32,000 bases of DNA from Paramicrosporidium saccamoebae KSL3 (taxonomy: Eukaryota > Fungi > Cryptomycota), in assembly GCA_002794465.1 (NCBI GenBank), contig MTSL01000178.1, positions 154,990 through 186,989 of the forward strand, written 5' to 3'. The notes under the pieces were generated by a model. The model saw only the letters and a list, made by a program, of their open reading frames with translations. It did not search any database and was not told where the DNA came from. This document shows positions 7,206 to 24,940 of the stretch, in pieces; within the stretch, counting starts at the first letter, position 1, and every line of letters starts with the position of its first letter. The translations under genes were made by a program, and so were the position numbers.

Positions 7206-8327
7206 TTATTGGGACCAATATTGAAGAATAGAGTGCACTCGAGAGGAAACAAGATTATATTCGGGCATGATGGAGGGTAGCAGATTGTTAGAGTCTCCCA
7301 ATACAATGCCACCATCGACAAGTTCGGTCAGATCAGGCGATTCTCTCTGCGCCAAAGATAAGCCGCTAAGGCAATAGCAGGTGTGGTAGTAATCCTCAGA
7401 TTTTTCAGGTTTGTCCCGAAGACCACCAGTGGCTTCGTTTTGACAACAGGCCAAGATGAATTTCTGGAGAGAGAGAGAATCGAAATAGGAGGCGGGACAG
7501 AATCGCCTCATTAGTGGGAATAGGGCACCAGTCCAGAACGAATAACAACCATCAACTAGCTTGTGTGTCCGGCCACGGAATCCGCCAGTGATGAGACATT
7601 GTGACATGACTGCAAAGCGATCTAGAGCATGTAAATCGACCCCTTCCACATCCTCAAGGATCGCCAAAGTGGCAAATGCGCAATATGTATAGCCTCCTTG
7701 GGCCTCGGCCATTGGAAGTGCACCAAATCCACCCTCATAAGATTGGCATTTCTTAATAAACGATGCAACATTTACGGTCAGTGCCGGCGTCAGGATTCCT
7801 GTCAGAGAGGCGGATACAATGGCGCAATAAGAGCCACGAACATCGATTTCACCGTCATCATGCGCAGTGAATGAGCCATCGGGTTGTTTCATTCTCCCCA
7901 AAAAGTCTGCCAATCCGCTGCGATTAATAGTTTCATATGCCGCTGCTGTGCCCACAATTGCCAGTGCCGAGACGGCAGCAAAGGTGCACATCAGGTGAGG
8001 AAGTTGTCCAGGACCACCGCCGAATCCACCCTTGGGGTGTTGACAGATTGCCAAGGTGGCTATGGCACGAGCTCGAAGAGCGTCAGTGAACGGATAATGG
8101 AGCAGGTCGAGGGCATGAAGCACCCAGTAGCAGAGCCAAGGCCGACTGGCATCCAGACTTGTGTACGCACTGGAGAGGCGTTCCAGTCCCTTTTCAAGAA
8201 ATGCTATATGCTTCCTCCTCTCCACTCTCAATGTCTCCAGGTCCGTGAGAGACTCATATAGCTGCTGGATAGATTGCTGTACCTCTGCCTCATCCAGTAA
8301 TGTAGGATATTCTTTGCAGAGTGCCAT
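7206..8327 (-). CDS. RAM1: Protein farnesyltransferase beta subunit
   Basis: LDASRPWLCYWVLHAL, GGFGGGPGQLPH, GEIDVRGSYCA, EAQGGYTYC, GRTHKLVDGCYSFW, DYYHTCYCLSGLS. Start placed at ATG 8327 (MALCKE); exact start uncertain. Confidence 0.95.
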   Translation of the reverse strand: MALCKEYPTLLDEAEVQQSIQQLYESLTDLETLRVERRKHIAFLEKGLERLSSAYTSLDASRPWLCYWVLHALDLLHYPFTDALRARAIATLAICQHPKGGFGGGPGQLPHLMCTFAAVSALAIVGTAAAYETINRSGLADFLGRMKQPDGSFTAHDDGEIDVRGSYCAIVSASLTGILTPALTVNVASFIKKCQSYEGGFGALPMAEAQGGYTYCAFATLAILEDVEGVDLHALDRFAVMSQCLITGGFRGRTHKLVDGCYSFWTGALFPLMRRFCPASYFDSLSLQKFILACCQNEATGGLRDKPEKSEDYYHTCYCLSGLSLAQRESPDLTELVDGGIVLGDSNNLLPSIMPEYNLVSSRVHSILQYWSQ

Positions 8328-8698
8328 GCCACGGTATGGACCCCGTGTGTTGGTCCTACTCCGTCCAATACACTTTGGACCTTGACAAGAAGAGTCGTAT
8401 ATATCAGGATGGAACACTCAAGTATTATCCGGCGACAATGACGGCCATTTTGACCGATATGGCGGACGGGGAAGTGGATTGCAAGAAACCGACAAGTGCA
8501 GGTGGATTGGTTGCAGGCGGCGAAATTAGCTTGCAGCGTACTATTGTTCGTATTGATTATGCAAACTGCATGCAGGCAGACCCAGTCACAGAGCCCAATG
8601 TTAAGCCGGTCTTGAGGACCGGTTCAGCTGTACGAGCTAATCCAATCGTCAAAGCTTCCTTAGCCATGGAGACTAATCCCACCAAAGTTCATACAACA

Positions 8699-9427
8699 AT
8701 GCAGTATGACATACTATTTACCAGTGACAAACAGAAAAAGGCCAAGAAATGGCATGATGGCTGGGTAAATATAGCAAATGGAATGGCCATTTTTTATAGC
8801 GACGACGACAAGGTGATACATCGGAAGAAATTGGAAAATGCAGATTTGGGGGAGGGATCCTTGCTGGAGACTGCCTCCTATTTGATAGAGATTACAGCAC
8901 CCACAGACCGAAATATCAAACCAAAGCAGAAACCCGTGAAGCTCGAGGAAGAGTCGCAACCAGAGCTACCGGTGGAATCTCCCGGCTCAGATGTCAAAAT
9001 AAGTATTCTGTACACGGCCGACAAGATTCGCAAGTCCAAGCGGTGGAAAGATGGCATTTTGCATTGGACCGAGTCCACCAACGAAGGTGTCTTTCGCGGT
9101 GAAGAAGAGAGAATTATTTTTCGGTACGTGTACTGATGAGACTAATGTGGGTAGAAGGAAAATGACACCACGGGAGCTAGTGGACGGATATGAAATGTCT
9201 AGTGGTACGTATTTGTTCCAAATAGGGGCTATTGTCTCTACTGGCGAGGATGCCACTATCAAGGCGCCTACATTAACTGTGAATGCACCCACGTTGAAAG
9301 CACCTGTGCCCATCAAAAGACCAAGAGTGACAAAACCCAAGGGAGCCATTGGACGATCTAGTACACACCAATTATGTTATTCTTATAATTAGATGCCGAT
9401 CTTGTCAACATGTTTAAAAAGACTTAA
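8699..9427 (+). CDS. Protein with two tandem DUF2439 (ZGRF1/Mte1 N-terminal-like) domains
   Basis: YDILFTSDKQKKAKKWHDG and ISILYTADKIRKSKRWKDG repeats. Intron 9124-9154 (GTACGT..CTAAT..TAG) joins ORFs 8321 and 9051 in frame; probable second intron 9361-9392 gives C-terminus GRSNADLVNMFKKT. The frame is open upstream, so the start is uncertain. Confidence 0.7.
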
Positions 9428-9563
9428 TAAACATCCCATTGCAGAATAATTTGGCCATTAGCATCATTGGTAAGTAAGCCAAATGAGTCATACAATCATT
9501 GGGCATGGCGATGAGTCATGAAATCATTTAAATGGACAGGCTTCAAAGGCCCGGTCAGTAAAG

Positions 9564-11837
9564 ATGACCTGCACACTGTATGTCCCCACCAAACTCGTGA
9601 CAAAAAACTCTGAGGCATTTGTATTCCAAGTGTTGTTAGCTGCATCTATCGCAAAGGTGTCTGTGGAGGTGGTGCTGGATGGCGCTGAGCACGCAGAAAA
9701 GCCTGCTGGATACCCGCTACCCATCCTGGTGGTTCGGGAGAACAACATCCCAACCGTCTATGTCAGTGGCAAGGCAGCTGTGCAAAAAATACTGGGAGAG
9801 GACTGCAACACACTAGACGGCCTCGTCTTGGAAGATGCCTACTGCAAGTTGGCTGCAGTAGTCTTGGAAGACGGACAGTTGGACGAGTCCCTATTCAAGG
9901 CTGTTGAGCTGACGACAAAAACCACCCAAGTGCTGGTTGCTGGCCTTGTTCGGGTCAGCGAGACAGTCCCCGAGACTGCCAGGCATTGGTACGATGGCTT
10001 CATTTCCCCGCATTCTGCCGCTCTAGCAGGAATTGACTGTCATTCGGCATCACGGACAGAACGGCGAGTCAAAGAGACGGTCTTGTTTGTAGAAGATGCC
10101 TCAGAAAAGAGGCTTCCCAAAAAGGATGGTCGAAATGTCATGATTACCGCAGCTCTCCCATATGTCAACAATGTTCCCCATCTCGGCAACATTATTGGAG
10201 CAGTATTAAGTGCAGACGTGTTTGCACGATATTGTCGTCTGCGTGGCTACCAAACATTGTACGTTTGCGGTACTGACGAGTATGGAACAGCTACTGAGAC
10301 CAAGGCGCTGGAGGAGGGTATTTCCTGTGCAGATCTATGTACAAAATACTTTAAGCTGCACGCGGGGATTTACGAATGGTTTGGCGTGAGCACTGACATT
10401 TTTGGTCGCTCTTCCACCCCCAAACAGACGGAGATTACACACGAAATCTTTAACGGCCTTTACAAGAATGGCTACTTTATTGAACAGTCAGTGGAGCAGA
10501 CGTACTGTGAAAAATGCACTCGATTCCTTGCAGACCGTTATGTGGAGGGCACCTGTCCACTTTGTGGCTACGGTGATGCCCGCGGAGACCAATGCGATGG
10601 ATGTGGTAAATTGGTAAATCCCACCGAGCTGAAGGATCCGCGTTGCAAGATTTGTCGTTCCACACCCGTTGTGCGTTCGTCTGACCATCTTTTCCTAGAT
10701 CTGACCAAATTGCAACCACAAATTGACGATTTTGTCAGCAGACAATCAGTGGCGGGTCGATGGGCTTCGAATTGCACGGCCATTTCCAAGGCTTGGCTAC
10801 ACGAGGGCCTTAAGCCACGTTGCATGACCCGTGATCTGCGCTGGGGAACTCCGGTGCCGGTGAAGGGATTCGAGGAAAAGGTCTTTTATGTCTGGTTCGA
10901 TGCCTGCTTTGGATACATTAGCATCACGGCCAACTACACGGACGACTGGCGTCAATGGTGGCAGAGTAACCAAGCCGACTCCCCCAAGGTGGAACTGTAC
11001 CAATTCATGGGCAAGGACAATGCACCTTTCCATGCAGTCATCTTCCCAGCAACCCTATTGGGCACTGTAAAACCCGATTCGGACGACACCTGTCCATGGA
11101 CCCTGGCCCATCATATCAATACCACTGAATATCTGAATTATGAGAGTGGCAAGTTTAGCAAGAGTCGAAGCATTGGAGTCTTTGGAAACGATGCCCGCGA
11201 CTCTGGCATTCCTGTGGCCGTCTGGCGCTACTATCTGCTTGCTCTCCGGCCCGAGGCCACTGATTCTGCCTTCTCTTGGGAAGAGTTTGGCACGCGCAAC
11301 AACACTGAGCTGCTCGCCAATCTCGGCAATTTTGTTAGTCGGATTACAAAATTTTCCGTGGCCAAGTATGACGGGATTGTCCCTGGGATCCAAGAACTCG
11401 CCAATGTTGATCAGAGCCTGATTGAACGTGTCAACGTAGAACTCCGTTCCTACATTGAGGCCATGGAGGGTGTGCATATCAAGTCGGCTTTGAAGACGGC
11501 CATGGCCATCAGCTCTCTGGGAAATGGCTATCTCACCGAAGCCGGTCTTGATAACCGTCTGCTCAAGGAACAGCCTGCCCGTTGCGCCACCATCATTACC
11601 ATCGCTCTGAATCTGGCCTATCTCCTGAGTGCCCTCCTGGATCCCTTCATCCCCACCTCTGCGGAGGATATTCGCAAAAACTTGAATGCGCCCGTGCGGA
11701 CCATACCCGAGAGCTTTGAAGTCGACGTTCTGCTGCAAGGACACCAACTGGGACAGCCCTTCCACTTGTTCACTAGACTGGATGAGGTACGGTTGGCGGA
11801 GCTGCGTGCCAAATTCTCAGGCAAACAAGTTAAATGA
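9564..11837 (+). CDS. MES1: Cytosolic methionyl-tRNA synthetase
   Basis: ITAALPYVNNVPHLGNIIG (HIGH), GTDEYG, zinc knuckles CEKC/CPLC/CDGC/CKIC, YVWFDA, KFSKS (KMSKS). Confidence 0.98.
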   Translation: MTCTLYVPTKLVTKNSEAFVFQVLLAASIAKVSVEVVLDGAEHAEKPAGYPLPILVVRENNIPTVYVSGKAAVQKILGEDCNTLDGLVLEDAYCKLAAVVLEDGQLDESLFKAVELTTKTTQVLVAGLVRVSETVPETARHWYDGFISPHSAALAGIDCHSASRTERRVKETVLFVEDASEKRLPKKDGRNVMITAALPYVNNVPHLGNIIGAVLSADVFARYCRLRGYQTLYVCGTDEYGTATETKALEEGISCADLCTKYFKLHAGIYEWFGVSTDIFGRSSTPKQTEITHEIFNGLYKNGYFIEQSVEQTYCEKCTRFLADRYVEGTCPLCGYGDARGDQCDGCGKLVNPTELKDPRCKICRSTPVVRSSDHLFLDLTKLQPQIDDFVSRQSVAGRWASNCTAISKAWLHEGLKPRCMTRDLRWGTPVPVKGFEEKVFYVWFDACFGYISITANYTDDWRQWWQSNQADSPKVELYQFMGKDNAPFHAVIFPATLLGTVKPDSDDTCPWTLAHHINTTEYLNYESGKFSKSRSIGVFGNDARDSGIPVAVWRYYLLALRPEATDSAFSWEEFGTRNNTELLANLGNFVSRITKFSVAKYDGIVPGIQELANVDQSLIERVNVELRSYIEAMEGVHIKSALKTAMAISSLGNGYLTEAGLDNRLLKEQPARCATIITIALNLAYLLSALLDPFIPTSAEDIRKNLNAPVRTIPESFEVDVLLQGHQLGQPFHLFTRLDEVRLAELRAKFSGKQVK

Positions 11838-12217: not shown

Positions 12218-13750
12218 TCATTGGGCCGACTCATCGCCAGACTTTAGAGCCGCATTCCTTTCGGCCTGCAGCGTACGGCACAGTTGCTCCAGTTTGGCCT
12301 TTTGCCCCCTTAGTGTCTCAAGGGCCGCATTCTGCTTCGTCCGCTCATCCGCCATTTCAATAATATTTCGACTCAACGTGGCGCATTTGCTATTCAGCTG
12401 GGCATTTTCGCGCTCGAGACGGGCAAGCTTGCCACCCATTGTTTCCATTTCGGCACGGAAGGTGCCAAAGAGATCGTTGCTCTTCCCGAGCGTCTCCTCC
12501 ACCTGACGGAACTTGTCTACATACTGACGCACCTGTGCCTTTAGTTCTTGTTCAGAACGCGTCAGCGCCGAGATGCGTCGGGTGCTATTTTCTAGGGAGG
12601 TCGTTTGCTTTGCCAGTTGGGTGGCCAGCAAGTCGGCTTTTTCTGTCGTGCAGAGGATGTCCACTTCACGCTGTCTAAGCTGCGCCCCAAAGTGCTCCTC
12701 CCTGGCATGGTAGAGCTCCGTCAAGGCGCTGATCCGATCAGAAAGTGTTGCAGAAGTTTCCTTTTCAAGAATTTCCTTTTCAGGAAGTGCGGGCAGAAGA
12801 AATTCCATTTTGATTTCGACACTGTGTTCGACTGGACGGACGCCTGTAGCAGCAGCGGCTGTAATGGCCGCCAACTCGTCTCGCCTGGCGCCCTCGGCCT
12901 TTATGCGACGATTTTCATTGTGAAGATCTCGACATAGTGACTCTAGACGGTGTTTGATGGCGTTGGCCTTGTCCAGCTCCATTTCTATGAGCTGACGCTG
13001 AATCCGTTCGTCCTGTGCAACCCTCGTGGCGGTATGCACCCGATGTCTCCAGTTCCGATCCTGTTTCACAAGCGTTGCAAATTTCTCCTTCAGGGCCTCC
13101 AACTTTAGCTTGCTTGCCAATTGGGGACTAGCAAGCACATTGAGGGCCGCATCCAGTTCGGCCTCCATTTTGGTCACCAGTTCATAGTCCACTGAAGAAG
13201 GCGGATGGACCTCTTTTTCGCCATCCAGCAAAACTTCCTCCACCTCCTCCTCTATCTCAAAACATTCACTGCCGCTCACCTCAAATTCAAAATCAACGCC
13301 ATCCTCAAATTCGTCGTCAAAGGCCTCTCCCTCTCCGGGGAATGCCAACGCACTGCGTTTTCCACGGATGACGCCGCCAAAGTAGCTTTTAGCAAGATTT
13401 GCCAATGACGAGGTTGGCGTTGATGTGGGTGCTGTTGCTCCATACAGCTGTTGTCGCACCTCACTGAGACGCTTTTTAAGCGACTGAAGAGAAAGCTCCG
13501 TCTTGGTGGCCGCGTTCATTGTGGTGGGGAACGGCTGTTCGCGTTGGAGAAGATATCGGTCCTGGTCTAGACGTTCCAGCTGTTGCTGAAGGGCCAGTAG
13601 ACGTGGCGAAAGTTCCTCCTCCAAGGTGGGCACCTCAGTCTCACCATCGAGCGACAGATTATCAAGGGCCGCAGGGAGACTGGGATGGGCGGCGGTGGGG
13701 GGAGCAGGCTGTGTGGTTGTCGTCTTTTTGCTCTTTTTCCCCTTTGCCAT
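12218..13750 (-). CDS. Taxilin-family coiled-coil protein
   Basis: KHRLESLCRDLHNENRRIK, YVDKFRQVEETLGKSNDLFGTFRAEMETM and KLEQLCRTLQAER are typical taxilin motifs. Confidence 0.9.
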   Translation of the reverse strand: MAKGKKSKKTTTTQPAPPTAAHPSLPAALDNLSLDGETEVPTLEEELSPRLLALQQQLERLDQDRYLLQREQPFPTTMNAATKTELSLQSLKKRLSEVRQQLYGATAPTSTPTSSLANLAKSYFGGVIRGKRSALAFPGEGEAFDDEFEDGVDFEFEVSGSECFEIEEEVEEVLLDGEKEVHPPSSVDYELVTKMEAELDAALNVLASPQLASKLKLEALKEKFATLVKQDRNWRHRVHTATRVAQDERIQRQLIEMELDKANAIKHRLESLCRDLHNENRRIKAEGARRDELAAITAAAATGVRPVEHSVEIKMEFLLPALPEKEILEKETSATLSDRISALTELYHAREEHFGAQLRQREVDILCTTEKADLLATQLAKQTTSLENSTRRISALTRSEQELKAQVRQYVDKFRQVEETLGKSNDLFGTFRAEMETMGGKLARLERENAQLNSKCATLSRNIIEMADERTKQNAALETLRGQKAKLEQLCRTLQAERNAALKSGDESAQ

Positions 13751-13888
13751 GTTCCTAGTAGGTGCGCTATAGTCGGTTCAAAGGTTCTAGTGATAGCGCA
13801 AAAAAGACCGGGGCTCGTCTCCCTGCACCGTGTTCTCTTGGGCCTACCACGGCCCTTCAGACACGGGAAATCTAGTTATTGTATATTA

Positions 13889-15366
13889 CTAAATAAGACA
13901 AGTCTTGATGTCTCTCGCATACACAGCTGCTTTCTGATCCGTAAGTGATGACAAGACTGGCCTGTGCTGATTGGTCAGCACCAGAGGCTGACTTGGGAAT
14001 ATCGTCGCAATTTGGTTGCCGAGTTCATGTTTTGCCAGCGCATTAATCTGCTCATGGACCCAGCTGGCGCCTTCGTAATCTGATTTAAACGTCTTCTTCC
14101 GCTTTGTGTAGGCACGGGCAATGTCGTGCATGGCTGGAGGCAAATATTTCACTGCCCGCTCTGAAATGTCGAGTACCATGACGGCGGCAGCGCCTGGCAT
14201 GAGCGTCTCTATTTTGGAAGCATCTGGACTGGGACGTACAAGGTCTTCAGCCACCCGGTCTGGGTCTAGGTCAGCAAGGACACCTATCGAGGGCGAGCAG
14301 TCGTTCTTGTAATCAATCCTCATGGCTGAGTCTACGTGTCCGGACATTAAATTCACCACTCCAACAGCGGAACGTAAAAATGATACAACACTCTCGTGGG
14401 TCTTTTTGGGTCTTTCACGTGACAATTTCAACAGAGTTGACTGAAAGTTGCGATGCACAGGGGGAAAGTGCTCTTTCATAAAGTGTTGTAAGAAGTCTTT
14501 GAATTTATGCACATCAATTTGATGACGTTCAACATTCATCATTTCTGCCGTCGTCTGCTTGCAATACGCAGGCCAGAGTGAGCTGTAGCTACCAAAGGGC
14601 ATGGCGGGCAAATAGTCATTACCTGAAAATGCAGTCAGTAAGGCGAAATCCAGCCGCCATTGCGCATCGGGTCGTCCCTGGGCCTGTTCCCGGAGTATCC
14701 GGGTGCAATGTTCCACGTCAAAGTTGCCAAAACGACTTTCGGGCTCCCAAGTTGGAAGCATTACGTGCATACGAGGAATACCATTGATGATGGACTGCAC
14801 ATAGGTATCACTGTCAAGTGCAACAATTGCCCGACTGACATTGGGGTTCGTGAGGGCGGACTGGCGAATTTCTTCAAACATTTTAAACTCGCCCTCGCCA
14901 GGACAGGATGCGCCACTGATGATGACTTTGGGAGAACGGGTGATGCCATCCAGGACAAGTCCCTTGATGAACTCTTCGAATCGGGTCATGAAGATGCAGC
15001 CCGGAGTGAATTGCTGGGAATCAAAATTACCGGTTCGCTTTGCTGACCAGGCATTGTCGACACGCCGTTTCCGTTGCTCGTCTAGCTTGGAAAACGATGC
15101 TGGCCCATCGAGGGTCAAGTAGAGTGTCTGCTCCGGGTGGTAGATTCGTGTCATGGCCTTTAATTTGGCACTGACATGTCGATACAGGGCTTGCTCATTG
15201 CGGACGACTCGTGCGCTTGAATGAAGCAAGGAATTGAGGTCTACATACACTTCGTCAAATGAATTCCTAAAATGATGACGTCATACAGCGGATACTTTGG
15301 CTCGGGGCGAGTAAAGGCGGCCTTGTAGGTTCCCTTCAGCCATTTGGTGAAGCCTCTCACTCCCAT
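13889..15366 (-). CDS. Compact XRN-family 5'-3' exoribonuclease
   Basis: ATG at 15366, 29-nt intron 15267-15295, giving MGVRGFTKWL...FDEVYVDLNSLLH. Further motifs LDGPASFSKLDEQRKRR, FDSQQFTPG, PGEGEFK, LDSD and GNDYLP; about 480 aa. Confidence 0.88.
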
Positions 15367-15456: not shown

Positions 15457-16281
15457 ATGTCGATTACGCTCAGTGGAACTCCCACTAACGACGCTATAGC
15501 CCGACTGGCCGCGTGTCTGACAAAGCTGCAGGAACAAATGGAACGAATGGCACAGATGCAGTCCGAGTCGACCCTGATGGTCAGTCGACTAAGCGGGGCA
15601 GTATTGAGACTTTCTCAAGAGATGGCTGATGGTAAGAATCGCATAGCTGGCCTGGAGGAACGACAAAAGAAGAGACGGAAGACGGACGGACTGCTGATTC
15701 CCAGTTTTGGTTTTGATAATCCCTCGTTGACTCCGACCATCAATCCCACCAGTCTGGCGGCGGATGTGAATGACATTCTGGGCCCACTGGTGCCAAGGAC
15801 GGCACGGGTTTTGGTGGTGGAGGATGATGTTGCCTATCAGTGGCTCGTCAGCAAGAATCTGGAGGCTAAAGGCTTAAATTGCACGCTGGCCCAGACTGCC
15901 GAAGAGGCGCTCATGTTTCTACAACACGCCTCCTTTGATCTGATCTTGATGGACATTTACCTGCCGGGTGGAATCAGCGGTCTAGATACGGCACGTCGCA
16001 TTCGAGCATTCGACTCTGTCACGCCGATTGTCAGCATGACCTCTGCCACTACTCCCCGTCAGATTGCATCCTATTTGGCAGGCGGAATGAATGATGTCCT
16101 TCCTAAACCCTTCTCCAAGGACGGTCTGCTGGGTCTGGTGTCACGGTTCTGTGCGTTGGATCTGGGTGAAAAGGGAAAGGGTCCGATTGAAGAGATTTTC
16201 TCCGATGACATTTTGGATGATGTGGGCACTTCTAGTTCTAGTGGCCGAGGAAGTACCTTTATGTTTGGGCCGCACTTGTAA
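15457..16281 (+). CDS. Response regulator with Skn7/Prr1-type receiver domain and N-terminal coiled coil
   Basis: VLVVEDD, DLILMDI (phospho-Asp), IRAFDSVTPIVSMT and GMNDVLPKPF closely resemble the Skn7 receiver; basic KKRRK patch. Confidence 0.88.
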   Translation: MSITLSGTPTNDAIARLAACLTKLQEQMERMAQMQSESTLMVSRLSGAVLRLSQEMADGKNRIAGLEERQKKRRKTDGLLIPSFGFDNPSLTPTINPTSLAADVNDILGPLVPRTARVLVVEDDVAYQWLVSKNLEAKGLNCTLAQTAEEALMFLQHASFDLILMDIYLPGGISGLDTARRIRAFDSVTPIVSMTSATTPRQIASYLAGGMNDVLPKPFSKDGLLGLVSRFCALDLGEKGKGPIEEIFSDDILDDVGTSSSSGRGSTFMFGPHL

Positions 16282-22658: not shown

Positions 22659-23075
22659 TTAGTCAGACCAGTCATCGTCATCATCGCTTTCAGTATCTAC
22701 AAGGTACTTGCGTCTGTTGGCCAAGGCAGACTGAATAGAATTTTGGGTACTACTCACTGGCTTTTCCGCTTTTCCCGCGGCCTTTAACTTTTTGCCCTCT
22801 CTGATTTGACCCAGCAAGTCATCGCGGCCGTCTGGAGCATAGCTTTGTTCCATTTGAGACAAGGGTGGAGGAGGGGGAGGTAGCGATACTGGAGGGGGTG
22901 GAGGCGGAGGAGGGATACGATTCATTGGTGGTGGCGGGGGGACCCGAGATTGGGGTGTTGATGGGAATACATCTTGCCGTAGATGGACCAAGTCACCCGC
23001 AGCCTCAAAATTGTCCTGTACAGGATCTGTGCTGACCAAACACCAAAGTAATGCGAGTTGCAGAGTCAATTTCAT
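22659..23075 (-). CDS. Putative secreted WASP/WAVE-like protein: signal peptide + polyproline + WH2 + Central + Acidic (VCA)
   Basis: MKLTLQLALLWCLVST signal-like N-terminus; three polyproline runs; GRDDLLGQIREGKKLK (WH2); SIQSALANRRKYL (C helix); ESDDDDDWSD* (acidic tail with Trp). Confidence 0.85.
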   Translation of the reverse strand: MKLTLQLALLWCLVSTDPVQDNFEAAGDLVHLRQDVFPSTPQSRVPPPPPMNRIPPPPPPPPVSLPPPPPPLSQMEQSYAPDGRDDLLGQIREGKKLKAAGKAEKPVSSTQNSIQSALANRRKYLVDTESDDDDDWSD

Positions 23076-23101
23076 TACTGATGCATCTAATTCACAGGAT
23101 G

Positions 23102-23111
23102 CTTATATAAA
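23102..23111. promoter_or_regulatory. Palindromic TATA element in the divergent promoter of the two VCA genes
   Basis: CTTATATAAG is a perfect 10-bp palindrome giving TATATAA on both strands, in the 134-bp gap between ATG 23075 (-) and ATG 23210 (+). Confidence 0.5.
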
Positions 23112-23209
23112 GTTTTTGGATCATTGGTTGGTTGAAATATACAAAGTTGCTGATTGGCCGAAATGATGTAAACAGAAGCTATATCAGGGTCTCGTGGGTC
23201 TATACCATC

Positions 23210-24940
23210 ATGATGGTGCTCAATCTTGCCATTCTCCTGTCAATGCTATGTGTGCAGTCCAATGCCGCGTACACGGAACAAGACATGCAAGATGCGTTGA
23301 ACCTGGGAGCAATCTGCAATCCCCATGTTCTGCCTCTTGCCCTCGGCCGTTCGGGGGTAGACGGTCACGAGCGCAAATTAATGGCCTGCCACTTAATGGG
23401 GGACCATAAATGTGCCATGAAGGCGCTAAGAAAGTTAGAAAAGGTTGTGCCCGAATCGGTACTGTTAGAAAAGTACCGAGCGTTAGCTACTGGCACACAA
23501 GATGTCTATCCGATTACGCAGAGCGAAACGGGCAGAGCAGTTTTTAAAGCGATTGGAGAAGGAAACAATGAAGCGGCCTTTGGTATTCTCGCAGCGAATA
23601 ATGAAGGCCATGAGGACTTGTGGCTGGCAGTAACATTGGCATCATATCCTGGAATGTATTTTAATAGAGTCACCGATCAAGTGCTGGCGACTGGTGACGT
23701 TAGGAAGGATAAATTCCTTGCTGACGCAGTGCGTATGATATCTCAATTATCAGATGAACAGCTCACTCAACGCTATAAAGAGCTGAAAGGACAGCTTAGC
23801 GAGGAGATGGCAAGGAAAGAAATGTATGCGCATGCAGCAGCAGGAAAGCTGGAATTGGCAGGAAAGTATGCCAAGATGGTGACAAGTGGGCCATATGCCG
23901 AGGATGCAGCCCGACTCCGTGGAGCATCTCTCCTGTGTTCGTCCAAGTACGACAAGGCATTCCAAGTGTTCTCTGATGTGATTAACGCAAGATATGGTGG
24001 AGACAATGCAGCGGCACCTAGAGTGATACAACATGGCCTGTATTTGGCACAAAAGAAACCAGATCTGACCGCTGTTGGTGCATTGGCAGAACATGCCATT
24101 GCATCCGGAGTGGTAACTGATGTTCCTGGATTTCCAGCAGTCTCCCAATTCACATATCAAGCGGCGTCTGGGCCAATATCGAGCGGACCGACGATGGGTA
24201 TTCCCCCGCCACCCCCAATGACCCGTATCCCACCACCACCACCACCACCAATGAATCGTATCCCTCCTCCGCCTCCATTGACACAACCCGCCCCTATCTA
24301 TGCCTCTCCACCAAATTTCTCATCCGAAGATTTGCAGTTTGCACGCTCTACCCTGCGAGGCACACCAACAATGGAAAAGCCAACGAGCGGCCGACCATCG
24401 ATGGCCGAACTCCTTAGCGGGGCCAGAAATCTACGTCCCATTACGTCTAACCAGCCAGTAGTACCTCCCCGTAGTGGGTTGGAATCTACTCTCAGCGAAG
24501 GATTTGACAGGATGGCAAGTCAGTTTCGTTCTCAGCCACTCGACTCTGAGTTGACCTCATCTGATGATGACGACGACGACTGGGACACTAGTCCTGGAGA
24601 TGATTATGGCTCGGGATTCACGCCACTACAGTACTCTCCACCGCCTGCTTATGCGCAACCACCAATACAGTCTGTTTATGAACAACCACCAGTACAGCCT
24701 GCTTATGTGCAGCCATCGGTGCAGCCTTCTTATGCACAGCCCTCAACTGCGCATTCGATCTTTGGAGAACGAGTACGTCGTGCAGCACCTCGAGTGGCAC
24801 CACAAGTAGTTCCAACACAGCAGACATCCCCATTTGGTGCTACGCTGAATCGTGTGCAGCAGCCTGCGCCTATAGAGGCCCCAGTAAAGCAAGGACGTGC
24901 CAAGGGGTTTTCAAATATTAGAAATATGTTTGGCGGCTGA
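23210..24940 (+). CDS. Putative secreted protein: signal peptide, helical (TPR-like) domain, polyproline, WH2-like motifs, C/A region and Pro/Gln/Tyr-rich tail
   Basis: MMVLNLAILLSMLCVQSNA|AY signal peptide; PPPPPMTRIPPPPPPPMNRIPPPPP; SSEDLQFARSTLRGT and GRPSMAELLSGARNLRPI WH2-like; GLESTLSEGFDRMASQF C-like; SSDDDDDDWD acidic. Confidence 0.8.
   Translation: MMVLNLAILLSMLCVQSNAAYTEQDMQDALNLGAICNPHVLPLALGRSGVDGHERKLMACHLMGDHKCAMKALRKLEKVVPESVLLEKYRALATGTQDVYPITQSETGRAVFKAIGEGNNEAAFGILAANNEGHEDLWLAVTLASYPGMYFNRVTDQVLATGDVRKDKFLADAVRMISQLSDEQLTQRYKELKGQLSEEMARKEMYAHAAAGKLELAGKYAKMVTSGPYAEDAARLRGASLLCSSKYDKAFQVFSDVINARYGGDNAAAPRVIQHGLYLAQKKPDLTAVGALAEHAIASGVVTDVPGFPAVSQFTYQAASGPISSGPTMGIPPPPPMTRIPPPPPPPMNRIPPPPPLTQPAPIYASPPNFSSEDLQFARSTLRGTPTMEKPTSGRPSMAELLSGARNLRPITSNQPVVPPRSGLESTLSEGFDRMASQFRSQPLDSELTSSDDDDDDWDTSPGDDYGSGFTPLQYSPPPAYAQPPIQSVYEQPPVQPAYVQPSVQPSYAQPSTAHSIFGERVRRAAPRVAPQVVPTQQTSPFGATLNRVQQPAPIEAPVKQGRAKGFSNIRNMFGG

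Follow-up and report, generated by a model that had tools for sequence, protein, structure and literature searches.

A putative exported mimic of WASP-family activators in the intranuclear parasite Paramicrosporidium saccamoebae

The stretch of DNA considered here (the window, 32 kb) belongs to contig MTSL01000178.1 (187 kb, assembly GCA_002794465.1) of the Rozellomycota parasite Paramicrosporidium saccamoebae. It encodes p138, a protein of 138 amino acid residues (aa) in which a signal-like N-terminus is combined with polyproline and with the three elements of the VCA module of nucleation-promoting factors (NPFs) belonging to the WASP family: a WH2 motif (V), a connector helix (C) and an acidic tail (A). 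Judged from its sequence, p138 may act as an exported activator of the host Arp2/3 complex, consisting of an unregulated polyproline-V-C-A module, and this reading is given a little more credence than doubt. A wider proposal is held more tentatively, somewhat short of an even chance. In that proposal the parasite would secrete a constitutively active WASP mimic from a recent two-gene cassette with a shared promoter, and would thereby rewire Arp2/3-dependent actin assembly in the nucleus or cytoplasm of its host amoeba. It would be the first NPF-mimic effector passed from one eukaryote to another, convergent with ActA/RickA and P78/83.

An exported constitutive NPF had already been proposed in an original prediction on this DNA. 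Its architecture, start site and parasitic source were borne out, whereas export and activation of the host Arp2/3 complex are predicted only. That account had not covered the related gene beside p138, nor the orthologs, nor the fact that p138 is present or absent depending on the lineage. The interpretation as an exported NPF came through every computational refutation check that was run and is considered plausible.

Domain architecture of p138

The gene and its parts are located in the window as follows.

22659..23075, minus strand: p138 gene, intact 138-aa open reading frame (ORF) including the stop codon (ORF list, translation, NCBI gene call)
23028..23075, minus strand: putative cleavable endoplasmic reticulum (ER) signal peptide, aa 1-16, MKLTLQLALLWCLVST (heuristic assignment from hydropathy, ortholog and a predicted helix at aa 2-14)
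22956..23027, minus strand: conserved segment at the mature N-terminus, aa 17-40, DPVQDNFEAAGDLVHLRQDVFPST (ratio of non-synonymous to synonymous substitution rates, dN/dS, 0.18)
22860..22955, minus strand: proline-rich region, aa 41-72, with runs P5, P8 and P6 (candidate profilin/SH3 binding)
22782..22835, minus strand: WH2 (V), aa 81-98, core DLLGQIREGKKLKAA (Pfam PF02205, N-WASP match, predicted helix at aa 84-92)
22698..22745, minus strand: amphipathic C (connector) helix, aa 111-126, QNSIQSALANRRKYLV, with a conserved RR (N-WASP alignment, predicted helix)
22662..22697, minus strand: acidic (A) tail, aa 127-138, DTESDDDDDWSD, with the putative Arp2/3-binding W136 (sequence; W-S-D in three orthologs)

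The protein (full sequence MKLTLQLALLWCLVSTDPVQDNFEAAGDLVHLRQDVFPSTPQSRVPPPPPMNRIPPPPPPPPVSLPPPPPPLSQMEQSYAPDGRDDLLGQIREGKKLKAAGKAEKPVSSTQNSIQSALANRRKYLVDTESDDDDDWSD) is encoded exactly on the contig, where NCBI calls the 138-aa product. Its translation is identical to the ORF described in the original prediction, with a signal-like start, polyproline, WH2, C helix and the acidic end DDDDDWSD (aa 131-138), and this description agrees with Pfam, phmmer and AlphaFold2 (AF2). The WH2 is recognized by PF02205 at aa 81-98 with 24.9 bits (gathering cut-off 23.1; E = 1.5e-5). When aa 73-138 were compared with PDB sequences by phmmer, N-WASP WH2 constructs ranked at the top (3m3n_W, E = 3.7e-8; 2vcp_D, E = 4.4e-4). 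In the comparison with full N-WASP (6uhc_H), aa 80-135 are aligned, so that both the C helix and the acidic stretch are included; its whole-sequence E of 0.066 is weak when taken alone.

In the AF2 model, which is of low confidence (predicted local distance difference test, pLDDT, of 60), only three helices are formed, namely aa 2-14, 84-92 (WH2) and 111-126 (C). Because the remainder is modelled as coil, p138 appears to contain no folded regulatory domain. The Pfam search returned no domain except the WH2 at E <= 0.1; WH1, SHD and GBD, the regulatory domains named in the original prediction, were found neither there nor as an AF2 fold. The segment of aa 17-40 has no Pfam match even at E <= 10 and is low-confidence coil in AF2. 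This segment might serve as a targeting or docking motif or in localisation. Neither the sequence nor the model contains a membrane anchor, a C-terminal hydrophobic segment or an oligomerisation domain. When all six frames of the window were scanned, the combination of polyproline with an acidic run followed by Trp was confined to the p138 ORF and its divergently oriented neighbour, nb576.

The composition of p138 could also suggest a secreted structural protein, proline-rich and acidic, that belongs to the spore, the polar filament or the parasite surface and is comparable to the microsporidian polar tube proteins, with a VCA-like end that is incidental or acts transiently at invasion. The signal-like peptide, the high proline content and the acidic tail would suit such a role, and polar filament proteins could not be identified by homology in the P. 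saccamoebae genome paper. However, the WH2 lies above the Pfam threshold and the N-WASP match reaches 3.7e-8. Moreover, V, C and A show the canonical order and the strongest constraint within p138, which has no cysteine-rich or repeat features. A structural role is thus regarded as very unlikely.

Orthologs, selection and the start codon

A syntenic ortholog of p138 is found on L002, a 1258-bp metagenome contig of the Joint Genome Institute (JGI), where it is placed tail-to-tail with the gene for cysteinyl-tRNA synthetase (CysRS). A prokaryotic gene caller had cut this ortholog to 76 aa; the full ORF comprises 136 aa and starts with MKLVVPLVLIMGFVGSDPIQNN. The dN/dS values were calculated by the Nei-Gojobori method for p138 against this ortholog. 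For the whole protein the ratio is 0.17, for the VCA (aa 73-138) 0.08, for the WH2 (aa 79-99) 0.04 and for the mature N-segment (aa 17-40) 0.18. In the 12 codons of the acidic tail, 2 non-synonymous differences stand against 5 synonymous ones. Because it is under purifying selection, p138 is more than a chance ORF and is a genuine gene. In a third, more distant ortholog (L006) the order polyproline-WH2-C-EEWSD is retained. Across all three orthologs the WH2 is kept, and A117, L118, R121 and R122 of the C helix are invariant, as is the W-S-D of the acidic tail.

The protein evolves faster than the adjacent housekeeping genes, since it is 67 % identical in L002 (CysRS tail: 91 %) and 40 % identical in L006 (flanking housekeeping genes: 73-78 %). 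Such a fast-evolving protein with a constrained core would match a pattern typical of effectors.

In all three orthologs the p138 reading frame ends in a stop codon that shares bases with a polyadenylation-type AATAAA signal (TAAATAAA; window 22659-22666, L002 526-533, L006 2532-2539). Sequence conservation ends directly 3' of this overlap.

At the other end of the gene, the following element separates p138 from nb576.

23076..23209, no strand assigned: shared divergent promoter of p138 and nb576, 134 bp, with two CCAAT boxes and a TATATA box about 35 nt 5' of the p138 ATG

The promoter is strongly conserved in L002, whereas the 3' flank of the gene has diverged. In-frame stops are located 8 codons (window) and 6 codons (L002) 5' of the conserved p138 ATG, and the ATG of nb576 lies 134 bp away on the opposite strand. 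A spliced upstream exon encoding a WH1 or SHD, the case named in the original prediction as speaking against it, is very unlikely because of the conserved ATG, the nearby upstream stops, the conserved TATA/CCAAT promoter and the closeness of the neighbour's start.

With respect to the source, MTSL00000000 is the genome of P. saccamoebae, which lives, according to its genome paper, as an obligate parasite within the nucleus of Saccamoeba; a parasitic source had been expected. The rest of the window has a compact, intron-poor, eukaryotic housekeeping content. Besides p138 the window encodes SepSecS, an ankyrin-repeat protein, a prenyltransferase, methionyl-tRNA synthetase, taxilin, XRN, a response-regulator receiver protein, Ssu72, CysRS, the ribonucleotide reductase (RNR) small subunit, trehalase, a WD40 protein and Dus. 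The best named matches of the adjoining CysRS are from early-diverging fungi (46-48 % identity). Contamination by the amoebozoan host or by bacteria was rejected as unlikely because of the eukaryotic housekeeping content, these early-diverging fungal relatives of the CysRS and the synteny kept in related compact genomes.

An annotation or assembly artefact would remove the signal-peptide fusion altogether, either because translation truly starts at M51 or M75 or because the contig belongs to the host or to a contaminant. The internal Met codons are indeed present, and the genome paper describes an assembly from a mixed (metagenomic) sample. However, codons 1-40 align to the L002 ortholog without indels, the ATG and the MKL start are kept, and codons 17-40, with their dN/dS of 0.18, are under constraint. 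In addition, the contig is compact and eukaryotic with housekeeping genes of fungal affinity, and the same gene order recurs in several related metagenomic contigs. An artefact is therefore hardly credible.

The signal-like N-terminus

The N-terminus of p138 behaves, by rule-based inspection, like a putative cleavable ER signal peptide. K2 is followed by a hydrophobic region (h-region) of 12 residues, L3-V14, and V14 and T16 occupy the -3 and -1 positions of a predicted cleavage site, VST/DP. The best 9-residue Kyte-Doolittle window scores 2.4 and starts at residue 7; a comparable hydrophobic stretch beginning within the first 10 residues is missing from all 17 other long ORFs of the window. 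In the L002 ortholog the signal-like peptide, MKLVVPLVLIMGFVGS followed by DP, has the same length. Here too K2 is present, and V14 and S16 are found at the aligned -3 and -1 positions before the conserved DP. The cleavage site expected in the original prediction thus has a rule-based counterpart in both proteins.

Between these two sequences, the first 16 codons differ by 12 non-synonymous changes without indels, with a dN/dS of about 1.3. Signal peptides usually evolve by residue changes that keep hydrophobicity. Since all 12 changes do so, these codons are read as evolving in the manner of a signal peptide. The charges around the h-region (K2 before it; D17, D21, E24 and D28 after it) would place the VCA on the exoplasmic side according to the positive-inside rule.

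Two other readings of the N-terminus were rejected. A transmembrane signal-anchor is disfavoured by an h-region of about 12 residues, which is too short to span the membrane. A mitochondrial presequence does not suit the composition, with its hydrophobic core, single basic residue and acidic residues directly after it.

Distribution among relatives

In a HMMER scan of 1.84 billion cluster representatives, the single strong match was the ortholog cluster (5.9e-40). A further 34 weaker VCA matches (E from 1e-9 to 1e-3) comprised eukaryotic WASP-like fragments and bacterial proteins. No named P. saccamoebae protein was present among the 35 library matches to the p138 VCA profile, and two scans of JGI metagenomes, one queried with the p138 alignment and the other with nb576, gave no matches. 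Related compact genomes were then compared by a synteny search anchored on the CysRS gene that adjoins p138. The contigs are given below with the identity of their CysRS.

L002, CysRS 91 % (C-terminal 140 aa only): full 136-aa p138 ortholog
L006, CysRS 78 %: diverged p138 ortholog (...ILDEIQEGRKLRSV...LSRALNARREAIVGSSDSEEWSD), N-terminus lost at the contig end
L003/L004, CysRS 73 %: empty site, CysRS directly abutting RNR2
L008, CysRS 69 %: empty site, CysRS directly abutting RNR2
L009, CysRS 64 %: empty site, CysRS directly abutting RNR2
L005, CysRS 65 %: only a homolog of the helical domain of the neighbour (E = 5e-18), without polyproline or acidic-Trp
L011/L012, CysRS 57 %: locus rearranged, cassette absent

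On the evidence of these contigs, p138 is lineage-specific and confined to a shallow clade, because the more distant relatives have an empty CysRS-RNR2 site.

In L003 the CysRS frame itself is split near its C-terminus (9739-10281), with overlapping ORFs at 8001-9851 and 9739-10281. Either a short intron or a frameshift, which the intron-less P. saccamoebae copy lacks, could account for this split.

Topology and distribution both bear on the question whether p138 instead serves the parasite itself. It could be an endogenous, stripped-down NPF, in which the hydrophobic helix tethers the VCA to the cytosolic face of a membrane or in which no ER signal exists at all. As a product of reductive evolution, such a factor would drive Arp2/3-dependent endocytosis or phagocytosis of host material by the parasite. 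Early-branching microsporidian relatives have kept WH1 and Arp2/3 subunit genes, and Rozella has kept both WASP and SCAR. Regulatory domains are often lost in reduced parasites, and phagocytosis by P. saccamoebae is a matter of speculation in the genome paper. On the other hand, the charges around the h-region predict that the C-terminus lies outside, and the h-region is only about 12 residues long. An empty syntenic site in relatives at 64-73 % CysRS identity would be unexpected for a core cytoskeletal factor, and p138 evolves much faster than the adjacent housekeeping genes. Finally, the neighbour, which has a classical signal-like peptide, bears a related tail. An endogenous function is considered unlikely.

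Proposed mechanism and points against it

If p138 is exported, aa 1-16 would direct it to the ER as a signal peptide and be cleaved off. About 122 aa would remain in the mature protein, which is presumed to be intrinsically disordered and would be released from the wall-less parasite straight into the host compartment. Its polyproline would then recruit profilin-actin and the WH2 would deliver an actin monomer, while the C helix and the acidic tail (W136) would bind and activate the host Arp2/3 complex. As a constitutively active mimic of the WASP family, p138 would in this way cause ectopic assembly of branched actin. Across species, from amoebae to mammals, VCA fragments on their own activate Arp2/3 constitutively.

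Four parts of this scheme go beyond the architecture of the protein and are put forward conditionally: that p138 is exported, that it is cleaved, that its target is in the host rather than in the parasite, and that it activates rather than inhibits. Exposure to the host compartment, in particular, is suggested by the signal-like peptide together with the wall-less intracellular growth form. Rozellomycota are described in the genome paper as growing as naked protoplasts within their host.

Several observations weigh against this scheme. The T at position -1 is acceptable, not optimal, for cleavage, and the h-region holds Q6 (P6 in the ortholog). Only three orthologs are available, one of them N-terminally truncated, and the signal peptide is seen in two sequences. 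The similarity of nb576 to the WH2/C region fails the profile test. Because early-branching relatives retain WH1 and Arp2/3 genes, the parasite probably has an Arp2/3 complex of its own, and p138 could act on it. An unanchored p138 would leave localised nucleation or motility unexplained, and a soluble VCA can equally sequester Arp2/3. Lastly, both the export and the activity of p138 are predictions from sequence.

Sequestration would give an exported p138 the opposite effect. As a decoy, the free VCA would bind host Arp2/3 and G-actin away from membranes. Instead of forming actin structures of use, it would suppress host processes that depend on Arp2/3, for example phagosome or autophagy handling, or nuclear functions of Arp2/3. 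Over-expressed soluble WA or VCA fragments delocalise Arp2/3 and block lamellipodia and the comet tails of pathogens. The evidence for export applies equally here, and the lack of a membrane anchor, a C-terminal hydrophobic segment and an oligomerisation domain would agree with such a decoy. However, the polyproline and the strongly conserved WH2 (dN/dS 0.04) fit productive nucleation and would be superfluous for the sequestration of Arp2/3, and the conserved N-segment of 24 aa could localise the protein. A decoy is considered unlikely.

Comparison with known activators and mimics

The VCA region of the WASP family (N-WASP) and p138 agree in the order of their parts: polyproline comes first, then WH2, then a C helix that contains a conserved Arg, and lastly an acidic tail that contains Trp. 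The -DDWSD end of p138 resembles the termini of Scar/WAVE proteins. In contrast, the members of the WASP, WAVE/SCAR, WASH and WHAMM/JMY subfamilies carry a WH1/EVH1, CRIB/GBD, SHD, WAHD1 or WMD/coiled-coil N-terminal domain, whereas p138 has a single WH2, a length of 138 aa and a signal-like start. We know of no endogenous WASP-family protein that begins with a signal-like peptide. Because the defining N-terminal domain is absent, p138 lies outside every WASP subfamily. By sequence comparison it is a match to the VCA module and not a member of WASP, WAVE, WASH or WHAMM.

For intracellular bacteria and some viruses, imitating the activators of the WASP family is a classic strategy. Host Arp2/3 is activated by the NPF mimics ActA of Listeria, RickA of Rickettsia, BimA of B. 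thailandensis and P78/83 of baculovirus, the last of which acts on nuclear actin. As p138 is read here, it shares with them a pathogen-encoded, unregulated WASP-like region; the likeness is one of description, and the host exposure of p138 is part of the prediction. The nuclear action of P78/83 parallels the intranuclear lifestyle of P. saccamoebae. These mimics differ from p138 in that they are bacterial or viral and are surface-anchored or virion-associated, whereas p138 comes from a eukaryotic genome, lacks an anchor and would leave the cell by the classical ER pathway.

Related designs were also found among the bacterial matches. The WH2 domain-containing protein P0005 of Candidatus Cardinium hertigii is among the best matches to the p138 profile (E = 3.1e-8). 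P0029 (245 aa; L013 5001-5738; E = 4.4e-4) combines a lipoprotein-type signal with polyproline and a WH2-C-acidic W region, and thus follows the same logic of export signal, polyproline and VCA as p138. It is located on a bacterial contig together with SecG, MlaE and TIM. Unlike p138, P0005 and P0029 are bacterial, have other export signals and contain extra coiled-coil or repeat regions. Synteny or orthology is lacking and the likeness is limited to the VCA. In P0004, likewise one of the closest matches, two VCA modules are placed behind a signal-like start. From their sequences, P0004, P0005 and P0029 look like uncharacterised NPF mimics of bacterial symbionts.

In the literature searched, neither Rozellomycota nor microsporidia were linked with WH2 or with secreted NPFs, and no equivalent mimic of WASP activators from a eukaryotic parasite was found. 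The earlier statement that no such effector had been described in this lineage agrees with this search. A 2022 review of actin-assembly mimics reportedly covers bacterial effectors only. To our knowledge, no effectors are known for Rozellomycota or for intranuclear parasites of amoebae. Actin, secretion and WH2 are not mentioned in the P. saccamoebae genome paper.

NPF mimicry by pathogens is thus familiar; what would plausibly be new is its occurrence in a eukaryotic parasite by way of a classical signal peptide. If the reading is true, p138 would be the first host-actin mimic of this kind from such a parasite. If it is exported and active, NPF mimicry would evolve convergently in parasitism between eukaryotes, and p138 would help to reveal how host actin, possibly in the nucleus, is manipulated by an intranuclear parasite. 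The naturally minimal polyproline-VCA of 122 aa could then also be used as a tool. The pattern among the relatives (gene present, an nb576-like gene without polyproline and acidic-Trp, empty site) offers a rare view of the origin of an effector cassette.

The divergent neighbour nb576

The neighbouring gene and the elements that it shares with p138 are located as follows.

23210..24940, plus strand: nb576, 576 aa, divergent neighbour gene of p138
24563..24583, plus strand: acidic-tryptophan motif DDDDDDW of nb576 (six-frame regular-expression scan)
22899..22940, no strand assigned: arm 1 of a 42-nt inverted repeat, 95 % identical, encoding PPPPMNRIPPPPPP, in the p138 polyproline
24236..24277, no strand assigned: arm 2 of this repeat, likewise encoding PPPPMNRIPPPPPP, in the nb576 polyproline

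The N-terminal part of nb576 consists of a textbook-like signal-like peptide (aa 1-19, MMVLNLAILLSMLCVQSNA followed by AY; ...VQSNA/AY) and an orphan all-alpha domain (aa 20-298). In the C-terminal part, polyproline (aa 331-356), a candidate degenerate WH2 (aa 394-412), a predicted helix (aa 426-436) and DDDDDDW (aa 452-458) are followed by a P/Q/Y-rich repeat tail. The nb576 family shares with p138 the locus, the signal-like N-terminus and the 42-nt polyproline segment, and nb576 has an acidic-Trp motif as well; the orphan domain of 280 aa sets it apart. The 42-nt repeat points to gene conversion or sequence exchange between the polyproline blocks of the two genes, or to a shared origin.

The homolog on L005 (5830-7704, 624 aa) matches the helical domain and the signal-like N-terminus of nb576 (E = 5e-18), and polyproline and acidic-Trp are absent from it. 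The polyproline/acidic-Trp tail of nb576 therefore looks like a recent acquisition. By its sequence, nb576 is probably a secreted helical protein with an acquired, related tail and a co-regulated partner of p138.

The similarity between the two proteins was examined in several ways. BLASTP of p138 against nb576 was not significant with composition adjustment. In an unadjusted Smith-Waterman comparison, the p138 VCA scored weakly above shuffled sequences against nb576 (z = 3.7, 4/1000). A profile hidden Markov model of three p138 VCAs did not detect nb576 among 208 six-frame segments even at E <= 10. The proposal that nb576 carries a demonstrable WH2/C was dropped, as it fails both Pfam and this profile. 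The N-terminal segments (signal and mature) of p138 were no more similar to those of nb576 or the L005 homolog than segment-wise shuffles, and an origin of p138 as a simple internal-deletion copy of nb576 is therefore unsupported.

For nb576 itself, a word-indexed homolog search returned only nb576. Its N-domain gave TPR_14 as a sub-threshold match (E = 0.083) and no PDB sequence match. The AF2 model (pLDDT 43) is too poor for a fold search. The C-terminal tail contains three tandem 27-nt units (24640-24741, 75-77 % identity), which encode degenerate nonapeptides of the form Y-x-Q-P-P/S-V/I-Q-P/S-x.

Other observations in the window

A gene for SepSecS (O-phosphoseryl-tRNA(Sec) selenium transferase) is located at 1305-2627 on the minus strand (Pfam E = 8e-114), and selenocysteine machinery is therefore implied in this Rozellomycota parasite. 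In the NCBI model of 12218-15250 on the minus strand (L001 16635-19342), one product of at least 981 aa comprises both an exonuclease part (XRN_N) and a taxilin domain. In the window this region consists of two separate long ORFs (13889-15250 and 12218-13750); the annotations may have been merged in the model, or an intron may join the two ORFs into one gene. Finally, a stand-alone response-regulator receiver-domain protein is encoded at 15457-16281 on the plus strand (PF00072, E = 2.8e-22) and is conserved at the corresponding locus of the relative L003.

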